From assembly GCA_002269645.1 (NCBI GenBank), contig NIVC01000835.1:62001-126000 (forward strand): a stretch of 64,000 nt of DNA, written 5' to 3'. The position numbers were made by a program, and so were the translations under genes. This document shows, piece after piece, positions 28,301-46,300 of this stretch; position 1 is the first letter of the stretch, and every line of letters begins with the position of its first letter. The stretch comes from Macrostomum lignano. Its lineage: Eukaryota. The notes beneath the pieces were generated by a model. That model was not told the origin of the DNA, made no database searches, and saw only the letters and a program-made list of their open reading frames with translations.

Positions 28301-31300
28301 AGATTAGCAATCCACTCTACTAATGACTTAGATTAGCAATCCACTCTACTAGACTTAGATTAGCAATCCACTCTACTAATGACTTAGATTAGCAATCCAC
28401 TCTACTAATGACTTAGATAGATTAGCAATCCACTCTACTAATGACCTAGATTAGCAATCCACTCTACTAGACTTAGATTAGCAATCCACTCTACTAATGA
28501 CTTAGATTAGCAATCCACTCTACTAATGACTTAGATAGATTAGCAATCCACTCTACTAATGACTTAGATTAGCAATCCACTCTACTAATGACTTGGATAG
28601 ATTAGCAATCCACTCTACTAATGACTTGGATAGATTAGCAATCCACTCTACTAATGACTAATTGTGAACTGACTAATACATTGAAATGACCAACCATGAG
28701 ATTACGAGCTCACCGAGTCTGCTGCAGGCCGTACTTGATGCCAATGCCGATTCGTGGCAGGCTGTTCACCACTTTTTTAACGCTCTCCTGATCCTCGAAT
28801 GCAAACATCACGGCGCCTTTGGTTTTGAATAGCAATAGTATATATATAAATAAGTAATCATAATAGTGATGGATAAAGATATAATGAGCATATTATTGAC
28901 ACATGGACTCACTTCTATTAGCCATAAAGATTTCCAAGGCAACATTTTTGTGCAAATAGCGCCGACTGAAGATGGCCCGGATTTCGTTGAAATGCCACTT
29001 CCCGTGCAGATGATCCACGTAGCGCAGCACCTTGGTAAACGGATTGAAATATACAGCATATATACTGTTTGTCTACTTATAGTAAGCCAAAGGAATATTT
29101 AAATAAAAAAGTTAATAAATAATTCAATTGCCGATATGCATAGAAAAATAACAAAAAATTCTTTGAATTCTTGACAATACGAGAAGACATGAGCTTAGGA
29201 CACATTAGTAGTATGAGGTCAAGCAAGCAAAGTTTGTGTTAATGAGATTATAAGGCTAAGTAGAAAGCCTTCATAGTTTTAGCTGCCCTAATGGATTTCT
29301 TGTGTATTCTTCGTGCACACTTTCGATTGTCGGTCTAAAAGCGAAAATAGTTTTAAAACAGGGATGATAACCTAACCCTAACCATGGCCTAGTACAGGGG
29401 TCGGCAAACTGTTTTACCTCAAGGGCCGGATAAAGAATCCAGCTCATGGCCGCGGGCGAGGAGAGAGGAGAGAAGATAAGAGGGGAGAGATAAGAGAGAG
29501 AGGAGAGAGGAGGGTAGAGAGGAGAGAGGAGGGGAGAGAGGAGAGAGGAGAGAAGAGAAGAGGGGAGAGAGAAGAGAGAGAGGAGAGAGGAGGGTAGAGA
29601 GGAGAGAGGAGGGGAGAGAGGAGAGAGGAGAGAAGAGAAGAGGGGAGAGAGAAGAGAGAGAGGAGAGAGGAGGGTAGAGAGGAGAGAGGATGGGAGAGAG
29701 GAGAGATGAGAGAAGAGAGAAGAGGTAAGAGGTAAGAGAAGGAAGCAGAGAAGAGACACCATCTTTGAGAGGGCCGGATTGCTATTTCGAAGTTTCAAAG
29801 ACCCGAGGGCCGGATAGAGAGGCTTCGCGGGCCGGAGTTCGCCGACCTCTGGCCTAGTAGGTTCTTTAAAACACAAAAAATTGCTAACTAAACTAAGTAG
29901 CTAACAAGGAGGCAGCAGTTATGATCATTCTGCTGACCCCTAAGCACGCTCACGCTCACACAGGGTGTACAGCAGGCCCTGACATTGTCTTCGTCAGACA
30001 GTGTACCGGTACAACTCAATCTAGCTGCGCCCTAAATGTCTGTTGAATGATTGAATTTTGCTGCAGAAAGAATTTGAGAATAATAAGGATTGCTTGTGCT
30101 GGATTATAGAACAGACTGCAAAGAAGTAGTTGCTAATCGCCAGGACAAGGCAGCAAAGTCAGCTGTCAGCGAAGGGCCATAGCTTTAGAGCATGTGCCGC
30201 CACTGATGGAGCTGGCGTATCCCCAGCAACCGGGGCCCAGCATCCACCCATCCCCTCCCCAGGGGAGGGGGGGCTCTGCCACTCTCTAGACATACACGTA
30301 TAAATAGATGAAGAAAACTCGATGCTTGCGCTAGAAAGATCCATCATGTCTTCGGGGCGGCTGAGGGAGCGAGCGAGCCGCCGACACGGGGCAAACTTAG
30401 TGGACGCATTATCAGCTGCTTTCTGTCTCTGCTGCCGCGTTTCTGCTTCTGCACCCGATGGGGGGGGGTGGGGTGCAGTTTCGGGGAATTTTAATAACAC
30501 ACGGTACAGGCGAGCACGGGCTAGCCGTGGCTTAGTGAATTTGTACCATCCGGCACAGTGCGGACAGGCGGACAGCAAGGCAGGTTTTTCGGTTTCTTTT
30601 CAAACCCAAAGCCGCCACAGCCGCCACTGCGACCACCGCGCCCAGCCACAACAGGATAACGTATTGTTTTCAACTGCTTCCTTCTTTCAAACAAAATCTG
30701 CTGCTGTTTCTGCTGCTGCTGCTACTAGAAGCAGTCCGGCAACCTCTAGCATACCCCGACCAGAGAAAAAATCTTTGGCTGGAGGTCTAAATTGTCAGAG
30801 GGTTGGGGGCAGCACAGACAGCAGTACTACCGGTATGAATAGATACTGCGTAAGGCTAGCAGGAGACACACAGGATGAATAATAATACAAGAAAGGGCCA
30901 GAGACAGATAGAGAGAGAGAGCGCTAGCTGGAGCTTTCCTTCATGGCGGCCCTATAAGCCTGTCGCTTTCAATTAGCTTCGGGGGCGACTCTTGAACAAA
31001 AAAATGCTAAAAGCCGAAGATTTTCTCTTTCGGCACACGAAAGAAAAGATGCAAGGGGAATGGGGGGGGGTGAACAGGAAGCCAGACAGACAGACTGCGG
31101 CCTGTCGGTCACTAGGGCGGCTACAGGAGAAGGCATGGATTAGACGTGGGATTAGCGCCGGAAGGTCATAACAGACTACGAATAGAGACAAGATTTGTCA
31201 AACAGCTGAGGTTGGCTTTGCAAATCAGGAAGGCATCAAGAGACACAATATGATTATTCGTTGCTATGAACACTTGAGCTGCAAAGAAAAGATAGAAAAA

Positions 31301-43300: not shown

Positions 43301-46300
43301 AGATAGACAGATATACAGACAGACAGACAGACAGACAGACAGACAGACAGACAGACAGACAGACAGACAGACAGACAGACAGACAGACAGACAGACAGAC
43401 AGACAGACAGACAGACAGATAGACAGACAGACAGACAGACAGATAGACAGACAGACAGACAGACAGACAGACAGACAGACAGACAGACAGACAGACACAG
43501 ACAGACAGACGGACAGACAGACAGACAGACAGACAGACAGATAGACGGACAGACAGACAGACAGACAGACAGACAGACAGACAGACAGACAGACAGATAG
43601 ACAGACAGACAGACAGATAGACAGACAGACAGACAGACAGATAGACAGATAGACAGACAGACAGACAGACAGACAGACAGACAGACAGACAGACAGACAG
43701 ACAGACAGACAGACAGACAGACAGGCAGACAGACACACAGGCATTAACAGACAGACAGATAGACAGACAGACAGACAGACAGACAGACAGACAGACAGAC
43801 AGACAGACAGACAGACAGACAGACAGACAGACACAGACAGACAGACACAGACAGACAGACGGACAGACAGACAGACAGACACACAGGCATTAACAGACAG
43901 ACAGGAGACAGACAGACAGACAGACAGACAGACAGACAGACACACAGGCATTAACAGACAGACAGATAGACAGACAGACAGACAGACAGACAGACAGACA
44001 GACACAGACAGACAGACGGACAGACAGACAGACAGACACACAGGCATTAACAGACAGACAGGAGACAGACAGACAGACAGACAGACAGACAGACAGACAG
44101 ACAGACAGACAGACAGACAGACAGACAGACAGACAGACAGACAGACAGACAGACAGACAGACATTAACAGACACACGGGCATTAACAGACAGACAGGAGA
44201 CAGACAGACAGACAGACAGACAGACAGACAGACACACAGGCATTAACAGACAGACAGGAGACAGACAGACAGACAGACAGACAGACAGACAGACAGACAG
44301 ACAGACAGACAGACAGACAGACAGACAGACAGACAGACAGACAGACAGACAGACAGACAGACAGACAGGCAGACAGACACACGGGCATTAACAGACAGAC
44401 AGGAGACAGACAGACAGACAGACAGACAGACAGACAGACAGACAGACAGACAGACAGACAGACAGACAGACATTAACAGACAGGCAGACAGACAGTCAGA
44501 CAGACAGACATTAACAGACAGGCAGACAGACAGACAGACAGACAGACAGACATTAACAGACAGGCAGACAGACACACGGGCATTAACAGACAGACAGAAA
44601 ACCCAACAAGACATGCCAGACGCACACAGCAAGAGACCTGCAGGCCAGCCAGCTGTGGCCAAGGCTGGCGGCTGGCTAAGAGACGCGGTCACCGAAGCGA
44701 GAACTCTGTCAGGAATTCCCAGCGGCGCGAGAGAAGCGTCCATCATATTGCGCGGCGAGCGCTCTTAGTAGTTCGTGGATGCCCCCCTTTCCTCCCAGTC
44801 CATCATAACACTCGGGGAGGCCCAGCTTCCCACCTTCATCATCAGCAGCAGCAGCAGCATCATAATCATCATAAGCTTGCATCCCATCCCCCCAGAGTCG
44901 TACAGCCCGAGTTCGAGCTGGGCACACGCGAACACGGAGAGTCCCGTGTAGACTAGAAGGGGCTGGTGGTGTGGGATCGGGGAGGGTGGGGGTGGGTCCG
45001 CCGGGGTCAGTCGCTGGGAGAATAATTAGTCAGTCAGAGAGGCCTCGGGTGCTTGTTTCTCCTCTGCGGTTCCTATCGTATTATTTTAATGCAAATTTCC
45101 TGACCGGCGGTGGCCACCAACCCTCTTCCCCCTACAGGGCGAGTCGCTACCCTGAACTCACCCCAAATTCTGGCAATGTCGCTATTTTCCCTGCCCGCCT
45201 GATCCAATAATCACAGATATGCATATATATATGCATTTAAAGCTGGAGATTATAGACACAACTTTCACTGTTTGGGATAGAATTTCTAAGACAGTCGAAA
45301 TATTTCAATAATTCATATAATCTATTCCAGTAATCAAAGGCAACAGTCGATCCCAGACTGAATCCCAAACTGTGTTTCAAACAGTTTGCAAACAGTCTCG
45401 ATCGGAAATCTGGAGGGTGTTGGAGGCTAACTTTTTGGCGCTAGCCTCTAATGATTTTTTTTATTTGGTTACACTAAACCAATGGGAGGCTAGAGTCTAG
45501 GTTAGAGCCCTACTCTTGGGTGTGGCAGCCTCTAAAAATGACCCAGATTTGATGCTCGCTATTTGAGGCTCGTATTGGAGGCTGGATTAGAGGCTCAATT
45601 AGAGGCTGAATTCGAGACTGGCGATTTGATGCTCAGTTAGAGGCTCAATTAGAGGCTCAACTAGTCATGGATTGCCTTTAAGAGTCGCGGCATCGAACCC
45701 GGGACGCATTTACCGCTTAGCTACTCTGCTTCCACCCAAGAGTTGTATCGTAGATATCTCTGTTATTTGTATGAGATAAAATAATAACAAACAAAAATAC
45801 GCAAAAACGCTTATGATCCTACTTTTTTCTAATAACAGTAGCAATATCGAGGTTATTGCTGAATAAATGCTAAAAAATACGAAAACAAGCGAAAATGTAA
45901 GAACAACGCATTAAAATGAAAAAATTCGCTTACCTTTTCGTCCAATTTTTTATTCTCCTCGGAGTCGGCGTCCATCTCGAAGTAGAGCTCGGCCTTCGTC
46001 ACGGACAGCTGGCCGACAATTTGGACTCCGGGTGCCAGTAATAGGCAGCTGATAGACAGAGCGACGGGGCCTGAAGCGGATTAGAATAAGGAAACGATAG
46101 GGGAGGTTGATGTCCGGTGTAGACTACTTGTACGTTTAAATACGTAGCATGAATCGGGTTATTGTTTTTTCTGAAGGGTAAGCTCTAATCCAGGAATATT
46201 TTTTCGATACATATCGGCGAGAATCAGCAACATTGTTTACGTTCTAATTTGATAATTAAAGTCGGGATTCGGCAACAAGAAAATTTAATTTACGAATAGA

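Follow-up and report, generated by a model that had tools for sequence, protein, structure and literature searches.

Macrostomum lignano very probably carries an inherited, rather than re-created, copy of the ancient bilaterian arrangement in which a Mab21 gene is nested within an Nbea/Lrba gene, a reading to which we assign, from sequence comparison, a probability of about 0.9. The window, by which we mean the whole stretch of 64,000 nucleotides that was analysed (positions 62,001 to 126,000 of contig NIVC01000835.1), belongs to the M. lignano assembly Mlig_3_7 (NIVC00000000; GCA_002269645.1). In this window, numbered from its first letter, a plus-strand mab-21 ORF (38498-39682) lies wholly inside a single intron (29031-45933) of a neurobeachin gene carried by the minus strand, that is, in antisense nesting. 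The arrangement would be inherited because the same intron holds an antisense mab-21 in a nematode, in a nemertean and, on indirect evidence, in human LRBA.

The nested gene and its host

The first-pass annotation had recognised an intact mab-21 ORF on the plus strand, and this identification was confirmed. The single-exon ORF at 38498-39682 contains 394 codons without frameshift, followed by a stop directly after ...LEKL, and its product matches both the Mab-21 (3.7e-36) and the Mab-21_C (1.9e-28) Pfam domains. Alignment of human MAB21L1 (PDB 5EOG) with ORF residues 41-394 is gapless over 354 residues (E 1.1e-172), the runners-up in the same comparison being a cGAS-like receptor (6.6e-32), cGAS (about 1e-18) and MB21D2 (7e-10), and the named relatives that share 66-73% identity with the product are all mab-21 or MAB21L1/2. 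Judged by these matches, the nested gene is a MAB21L1/L2-type orthologue and not cGAS or MB21D2. Most named mab-21 homologues are 359-368 aa long, with Met31 (38588) or Met38 (38609) as the more probable conserved start, since the initial 30-37 residues, which include poly-Gly, have no counterpart in relatives. A candidate core promoter extends from 38261 to 38412 on the plus strand, 90-240 bp 5' of the first mab-21 ATG, with CCAAT/ATTGG boxes at 38261, 38302, 38375 and 38408 and a TATAAA motif at 38350; the four boxes compare with about 0.4 expected per 150 bp from the window mean of 2.9/kb, an observation made post hoc. It should be noted that the public gene table of GCA_002269645.1, an annotation that is transcriptome-derived according to its paper, already calls the same 394-aa product on NIVC01000835.1.

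The host exons were located by tblastn with homologues, followed by splice modelling. The resulting model comprises 14 exons on the minus strand (51321..13242), every intron being GT-AG, and ends in a single terminal stop. Upstream of the hosting intron, three exons are placed precisely (51321-50953, which falls within the open stretch 51864-50851, 50078-49915 and 48817-48555) and encode DUF1088 and a linker. They belong to a 5' region (46071..62013) delineated from open stretches, tblastn and Pfam, in which further exons are placed approximately from open reading stretches alone, at ~62013-61573 (the end of DUF4704), ~60987-59956, ~57034 onward and ~54022 onward. The exon that precedes the hosting intron (45934..46070, 137 nt) encodes the first portion of PH_BEACH, which continues in the exon that follows it (28913..29030, 118 nt). 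The remainder of PH_BEACH, the BEACH domain and the WD40 propeller are encoded in the region 13242..28816 by exons 28816-28714, 27908-27680, 25883-25470, 24824-24392, 17373-17266, 16702-16533, 15933-15681, 14390-14042 and 13335-13242, the last of which ends with the TAG stop at 13244-13242. When one upstream exon was added to the spliced model, Pfam returned DUF4704 (1.2e-35) and DUF1088 (1.9e-64); its C-terminal part matches PH_BEACH, Beach (1.1e-124) and NBCH_WD40 (9.7e-43). By these domains and by its alignments with human proteins, the host gene encodes a BEACH protein of the NBEA/LRBA type. The host gene extends past the right end of the window, and the public gene table lists a 2711-aa minus-strand product that spans mab-21.

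The hosting intron

In the best-scoring splice solution, the minus-strand exon ends with ...AAATTGGACGAAAAG|gtaagc at 45934 and the next one opens with ccaag|GTGCTGCGCTACGTG at 29030, which defines a GT-AG intron (GTAAGC...CCAAG) of 16,903 bp in phase 0, a length that may be imprecise in this repeat-rich draft assembly. The flanking protein sequences are ...KKLDEK and VLRYVDHL..., and tblastn with homologues found no coding sequence resembling the host within the intron. When joined over the junction, the host protein aligns without gaps to the PH-BEACH crystal constructs of human LRBA (1T77, 2.1e-207) and NBEA (1MI1, 6.3e-201), in which the intron falls after residue 46. In the spliced model, PH_BEACH occupies residues 274-370 and the exon junction lies at 311|312, therefore the intron splits this domain. 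The canonical sites and the stop-free spliced model thus agree with the phase-0, 16.9-kb intron between KKLDEK and VLRYVDHL described in the first-pass annotation, and the Pfam match and the gapless LRBA/NBEA alignment with its statement that the PH domain is interrupted.

The other introns of the 14-exon model measure 874, 1097, 2484, 96, 805, 1796, 645, 7018, 563, 599, 1290 and 706 bp, and those further upstream in the window about 3 kb or less, as estimated from ORF spacing. The second-largest intron in the window is thus 7,018 bp, provided that the small exon 17373-17266 (LPLSLDPL motif) is included, in accordance with the 7 kb given earlier. The description of the hosting intron as the largest of the neurobeachin gene holds for the part of the gene within the window, because the gene runs past the right window end.

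Ten arrays of tandem repeats (Tandem Repeats Finder) account for 5,854 bp, or 35%, of the intron. The array at 36703..38006, also detected by self-BLAST, consists of about 82 copies of a 16-bp unit, CTTCACAAACTGGACA, and stops ~490 bp before the mab-21 ATG; the others lie at 29458-29756, 31314-31950, 32888-33228, 33902-34086, 34328-34727, 39849-40381, 41369-41786, 42966-44598 and 45561-45664. No further gene or recognisable transposon was found in the intron, since its six other ORFs have no Pfam match, Rfam families and tRNAs were not detected across the window, and self-BLAST revealed no dispersed repeats common to the intron and the rest of the window other than the tandem arrays and a purine-rich tract.

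The same intron in other animals

Judged from its position in the protein, the hosting intron is orthologous in the flatworm, a nematode and a nemertean. In Caenorhabditis bovis, the host junction reads LYKKQSAQ|gt...ag|VLRYCEN, at the same position and in phase 0, and mab-21 lies in antisense between both exons, in an intron of 3.76 kb that leaves ~1.1 kb of spare DNA. In the nemertean Tubulanus polymorphus, an antisense mab-21 is found in a 3009-aa neurobeachin gene, directly after the GPV...KK exon. The junction common to the three animals is K/Q|V-L-x-Y in phase 0. The shared intron, phase and orientation in C. bovis and Tubulanus bear out the proposal of the first-pass annotation that an ancestral nest was retained. 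Of the two outcomes that it had opposed, a homologous and a non-homologous host intron, the first was found, directly in C. bovis and Tubulanus and indirectly in human LRBA.

For human LRBA, a deletion located just upstream of MAB21L2 has been described that removes four exons, 150 aa and parts of the PH and BEACH domains (PMC11511899). These 150 aa match construct residues 47-196, i.e. the 150 aa that follow the junction, and about four exon segments are marked by the HSPs over residues 47-196 in Lytechinus, a sea urchin. The sequence data are consistent with the human LRBA nest occupying the same intron as that of the flatworm. This junction is also the exact point of divergence of more than 50 public gene models or isoforms, which come from vertebrates (NBEA and LRBA), echinoderms, molluscs, arthropods and nematodes.

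Besides Tubulanus, which is nested as described above, further animals were surveyed: the tapeworm Rodentolepis nana has an intron at the same splice position without mab-21, and in the annelid Dimorphilus mab-21 is no longer nested. Ridgeia shares the splice position of the Macrostomum junction. In the ostracod Darwinula, mab-21 has an N-terminal host model on one side and a C-terminal one on the other, the break between the two falling at this junction, and no flanking PH exons were found within 10 kb; this is consistent with a nest but does not pin the intron. The Schistosoma curassoni contig is uninformative because its host model begins at the contig end.

Maintenance of the nest

We propose that mab-21 is an independent transcription unit on the strand opposite to its host, within a phase-0 intron of a single host orthologue. 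Host transcription would pass mab-21 in antisense, and the entire 16.9-kb intron would be spliced out, joining 45934 to 29030. Two factors may keep the pair together: mab-21 cis-regulatory DNA interleaved among the host introns, a situation demonstrated in vertebrates only, and the fact that no break could release mab-21 without hitting an important host gene. The length of the intron may reflect its content, namely mab-21 with its flanking DNA, together with tandem repeats that total 5.9 kb.

The ancestral nest could also persist by passive entrapment only, without shared or interleaved enhancers and with an intron enlarged by repeat expansion, a serious but less favoured possibility. Regulatory entanglement is indeed opposed by the tandem-repeat share of 35% (compared to 15% for simple and tandem repeats genome-wide) and by the survival of the C. 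bovis nest within a 3.8-kb intron; moreover, expression of the host and of the antisense gene is reported to be uncorrelated in nematodes (PMC4994411), and a BLASTN comparison of the intron with mab-21 loci from four other phyla recovered the mab-21 CDS and no conserved non-coding sequence. At such distances, which are too great for enhancer detection, lack of cross-phylum conservation says nothing on lineage-specific enhancers, however, and coding sequence and tandem repeats together leave ~9.9 kb of the intron free. In vertebrates, furthermore, MAB21L2 enhancers sit inside LRBA introns and their deletion causes eye defects (PMC11511899). The suggestion of the first-pass annotation that the oversized intron harbours the regulatory landscape of mab-21 is neither supported nor contradicted by these observations. 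The nest is dispensable in some lineages: besides Dimorphilus, it is absent in Drosophila (PMC1784063) and in Pristionchus (PMC4994411).

Continuity of the host gene and origin of the nest

It is unlikely, though worth stating, that the 29030 junction serves across bilaterians as the entry point to a shortened neurobeachin (truncated PH, BEACH and WD40), and that the regulatory neighbourhood which this isoform would share with mab-21, rather than mab-21 enhancers alone, keeps the nest. The isoform may originate at a promoter within the mab-21-bearing intron or, in the case of Macrostomum, at a spliced-leader acceptor located there. Many public isoforms start exactly at the junction, and many of these starts are possibly annotation artefacts. 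The short form predicted in C. bovis begins ~0.8 kb from mab-21, head-to-head; in Lytechinus and Ridgeia, the 10 kb around the corresponding start contain no mab-21. A shared promoter driving mab-21 in one direction and the short host isoform in the other agrees with the C. bovis locus alone, those of Lytechinus and Ridgeia being at odds with it, and is kept only as part of this unlikely reading.

Quite improbable, in our view, is a host that is itself split, whose N-terminal unit would end near 45934 and whose C-terminal unit, PH(part)-BEACH-WD40, would start inside the intron, maybe by spliced-leader trans-splicing at 29030, in which case mab-21 would be intergenic or both host forms would coexist. 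Many public models do begin exactly at the junction with short unique N-termini, among them RefSeq isoforms of Octopus, Sander, Myripristis and Lytechinus, the Darwinula annotation breaks the host here, that of C. bovis divides it into two genes at the junction, and M. lignano makes very frequent use of trans-splicing (PMC5730564). However, a long intron that bears a gene is expected to produce artefactual ab initio starts at this place, the two splice sites are canonical and compatible in phase, PH_BEACH is complete only when both exons are joined, and the public gene table has one 2711-aa product over the locus.

Finally, the chance landing of an intronless mab-21 retrocopy in the flatworm lineage, convergent with vertebrates, is scarcely tenable and was rejected, as intron, phase and antisense orientation are common to C. 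bovis and Tubulanus, with human LRBA data consistent, and neither a poly(A) tract nor a target-site duplication was seen beside the ORF. The single uninterrupted ORF of M. lignano does differ from the intron-bearing mab-21 of Darwinula and of C. bovis (five HSP blocks, several introns), but lack of introns is no retrocopy signature because mab-21 of Nematostella and vertebrates is likewise intronless (PMC1784063). We thus retain the inherited nest as the preferred reading.

Significance and comparison with known nests

That the pairing is not new, as the first-pass annotation had stated, is borne out by the literature. Mab21-in-Nbea/Lrba nesting has been described as conserved across Metazoa (Tsang et al. 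2009, Genomics 94:177, as cited) and reported in taxa including Cnidaria and Deuterostomia (Nikolaidis et al. 2007, PMC1784063), and in nematodes mab-21 lies in the largest sel-2 intron in all clades (Rödelsperger 2016, PMC4994411). The gene arrangement being already described and both genes being in the public table, only the flatworm instance appears undescribed; the observation is real, ordinary and adds little that is new. It adds Platyhelminthes, as well as Nemertea, to the phyla that retain the nest, and assigns it to a single, exactly defined phase-0 intron in flatworm, nemertean and nematode, to which human LRBA conforms indirectly. The compact 16.9-kb locus of M. lignano, a species in which transgenesis works (PMC5730564), could separate enhancer interleaving from simple entrapment, and at the human counterpart locus a non-coding deletion leads to eye malformations (PMC11511899). 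Of use for annotation is that automated gene prediction interrupts neurobeachin at this intron in many animals. The practical value is modest.

Genomic regulatory blocks, in which target and bystander genes are kept syntenic by interleaved enhancers (Kikuta et al. 2007, as cited), offer an analogy of mechanism rather than a demonstrated membership: here too, a developmental regulator (mab-21) is tied to an unrelated host across phyla, the nest lying at the same intron in Platyhelminthes, Nemertea and Nematoda. The vertebrate Mab21l2-in-Lrba and Mab21l1-in-Nbea nests resemble that of the flatworm in their orthologous genes, antisense orientation and intronless nested CDS and, as the 150-aa, four-exon LRBA deletion suggests, in an intron that interrupts the PH-BEACH region. 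M. lignano has a single host/mab-21 pair with no NBEA/LRBA duplication, whereas vertebrates have two nests, located among >100 kb of intronic DNA instead of a 16.9-kb intron and with demonstrated enhancers. The nematode nest differs by the 3.76-kb intron, the intron-bearing mab-21 and the host annotated as two genes in C. bovis. By contrast, its hosting intron is the largest of the gene (PMC4994411), as is that of the flatworm within the window, and the phase-0 junction of C. bovis, KKQSAQ|VLRYCEN, is identical in position to that of M. lignano, with mab-21 again in antisense.

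An intact mab-21 gene on the plus strand

A single long open reading frame of 394 codons occupies positions 38498-39682 of the plus strand. It contains both Pfam mab-21 domains (Mab-21, 3.7e-36; Mab-21_C, 1.9e-28), and human MAB21L1 (PDB 5EOG) aligns without gaps to residues 41-394 (E 1.1e-172), down to the common C-terminal LEKL, whereas cGAS-like proteins matched at 1e-32 or weaker. On the basis of these domains and alignments, this frame is identified as an intact gene of the MAB21L1/L2 type. A product identical over its 394 aa is recorded once, on contig NIVC01000835.1 of Mlig_3_7, the assembly of the free-living flatworm Macrostomum lignano (NIVC00000000), and the coordinates place window position 1 at contig position 62001. 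The N-terminal 30-37 residues of the 394-aa product (38498-38608) are glycine-rich, with a poly-glycine run derived from a GGN repeat, and this extension has no counterpart in relatives, which are mostly 359-368 aa long. The public start codon is therefore probably placed too far upstream, translation starting more likely at Met31 (38588) or Met38 (38609). Four CCAAT/ATTGG boxes and one TATAAA are found directly 5' of the mab-21 ATG; singled out post hoc, they give a weak hint of a candidate promoter belonging to mab-21 itself.

The mab-21-bearing intron splits the PH-like domain of the host

Open stretches and tblastn searches with homologues delineated a neurobeachin/LRBA gene on the minus strand, running from past the right end of the window to a stop codon at 13244-13242. 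The spliced model from 51321 to 13242 comprises 14 exons separated by GT-AG introns only, and yields a 1067-aa product with no stop other than the terminal one. Pfam recognized DUF1088, PH_BEACH, Beach and the neurobeachin WD40 propeller in this model, and matched an exon further upstream to the end of DUF4704. The exon at 46070-45934 ends with KKLDEK followed by gtaagc, and the next one starts at 29030, where ccaag precedes VLRYVDHL. The intron between them (29031-45933, minus strand) is 16,903 bp long, is in phase 0 and carries mab-21, so that the description of frame, intron and junction in the first-pass annotation was correct throughout. Across the junction the host protein aligns without gaps to the PH-BEACH crystal constructs of human LRBA (1T77) and NBEA (1MI1), with the intron located after construct residue 46. 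Since PH_BEACH covers residues 274-370 of the host model and the junction falls between residues 311 and 312, the PH-like domain is split by the intron, as had been proposed.

The remaining introns of the model range from 96 to 2,484 bp, except for one of 7,018 bp, in agreement with the 7 kb initially given for the second largest. Further upstream within the window, the spacing of coding stretches indicates host introns of about 3 kb or less; it should be noted that "largest intron" is valid for the window only, the 5' part of the host gene lying beyond it. A small, poorly conserved exon (AVNQTQ...LPLSLDPL, 17266-17373, minus strand) interrupts what would otherwise look like an intron of 7.7 kb, and is easily missed because the LPLSLDPL motif is the sole part that matches relatives. 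As the mean intron of the M. lignano genome is 1.1-1.4 kb (simple or tandem repeats making up 15% of this genome; PMC5730564), the mab-21-bearing intron is more than 10 times longer than average.

Contents of the intron

Ten tandem arrays totalling 5,854 bp account for 35% of the intron. Among them are a 1.3-kb array of about 82 copies of a 16-bp unit (36703-38006), whose end lies some 490 bp upstream of mab-21, a (GACA)n array of 1.6 kb with about 405 copies (42966-44598) and an (ATAG)n array of about 159 copies (31314-31950). These very long repeats, together with repetitive leucine/serine-rich frames at the left end of the window (443-2020, outside the Tandem Repeats Finder run), generate many spurious long open reading frames on both strands. 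About 9.9 kb of the intron falls outside both the tandem repeats and the coding sequence of mab-21. None of the six other open reading frames inside the intron had a Pfam match, tblastn with homologues detected no host-like coding sequence there, and apart from a purine-rich tract no dispersed repeat was common to the intron and the rest of the window. No Rfam family or tRNA was found across the window.

The same host intron in other animals

In the nematode Caenorhabditis bovis, the host reads LYKKQSAQ before gtagtc and, after ttacag, VLRYCEN, which is the same position and phase, and a 363-aa mab-21 gene lies antisense within the 3.76-kb interval between these two exons. The public annotation of this locus (6543-10166) divides the neurobeachin homologue into genes of 1751 and 766 aa flanking mab-21, the predicted start of the latter lying head-to-head with that of mab-21 at about 0.8 kb. 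In the nemertean Tubulanus polymorphus, a 3009-aa neurobeachin gene contains mab-21 in antisense orientation; GPV...KK is the final host exon ahead of it, and the following one is more than 19.5 kb away. In the ostracod Darwinula, mab-21 is found between N-terminal and C-terminal host models, and homology in the latter begins exactly at V-L-A-Y.

More than 50 of the 120 best neurobeachin/LRBA protein matches begin at the junction or diverge there into a short unique N-terminus (Octopus MKQRKAG/VLAY, Sander MKGCRAK/VLAY, Lytechinus MEE/VMVY, Caenorhabditis MFGGT/VLRY). Vertebrate NBEA and LRBA are among them, and so are entries from sea urchins, a crinoid, a tunicate, molluscs, arachnids, insects, crustaceans and nematodes, which shows that this splice boundary is common to Bilateria. 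Either the mab-21 intron routinely leads gene predictors to cut the host, or an internal start giving a short BEACH-WD40 isoform is widespread. The distance from the junction to the next conserved boundary (...DLSK/PIGALNP) is exactly 150 residues, a span over which the HSPs of the sea urchin Lytechinus mark about four exon segments. A 113.6-kb deletion published for human LRBA, 19.38 kb upstream of MAB21L2, takes out four exons; the frame is kept, 150 amino acids are lost, and the PH and BEACH domains are partly missing (PMC11511899), which is indirect evidence consistent with the same host intron in humans.

The tapeworm Rodentolepis nana has kept the same phase-0 intron (UZAE01013566.1, locus 5396-6700; KIDPQ/VLAYTG), about 1 kb long, but lacks mab-21 both there and on the rest of its 21-kb contig, and no named flatworm mab-21 besides that of the window was present among the 120 best matches; parasitic flatworms may have lost mab-21 or carry it elsewhere. 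In Dimorphilus gyrociliatus, an annelid with a very compact genome, mab-21 (CAJFCJ010000007.1) is not nested and has unrelated neighbours, namely ceramide/diacylglycerol kinase, RING/ZZ, Kelch and TGF-beta genes. The nest is also reported to have been lost in Drosophila (PMC1784063) and Pristionchus (PMC4994411).

A nested pair, very probably inherited

Taken together, these results argue for a nested pair inherited at an orthologous host intron, in which mab-21 would be transcribed as its own unit and the host spliced across it, a reading to which we assign a probability of roughly 0.9. Ancestral retention at a homologous intron, suggested in the first-pass annotation along with a check of the host intron position, withstands that check and is well supported by the position and phase in C. 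bovis and by the antisense mab-21 of Tubulanus. We infer that the pair is kept by interleaved cis-regulation, passive entrapment, or both. Entrapment as the sole cause of its persistence is possible, if somewhat improbable. Nucleotide conservation with the annelid, ostracod, nematode and nemertean mab-21 loci was confined to coding sequence. In vertebrates, mab-21 enhancers in host introns have experimental backing (PMC11511899). The idea that such enhancers, held within the intron, would account for its large size is borrowed from vertebrates and is neither supported nor refuted here; the nest itself needs little space, as the 3.8-kb intron of C. bovis indicates. A split host locus, or an added short host isoform starting at the junction, is unlikely; database entries do break at this point, but the public gene table (GCA_002269645.1, NIVC01000835.1, 435,522 bp) calls a 2711-aa gene across the 394-aa product on the opposite strand. 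Independent insertion of mab-21 is effectively excluded by the intron, phase and orientation common to other animals.

Full-text searching retrieved no paper tying mab-21 to Macrostomum and none on the pair in flatworms, so that the flatworm instance seems undescribed, though the assembly's public gene table lists both genes. The nesting of Mab21 in Nbea/Lrba is itself already known, as was acknowledged at the outset. Tsang et al. (2009), as quoted, describe enhancers in the host intron and a nest conserved throughout Metazoa except some insects. Nikolaidis et al. (2007) reported that, in all metazoans studied except Drosophila, an NBEA or LRBA intron houses mab-21-family genes (PMC1784063), and Rödelsperger et al. 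(2016) found all nematode clades with mab-21 in sel-2's longest intron (PMC4994411).
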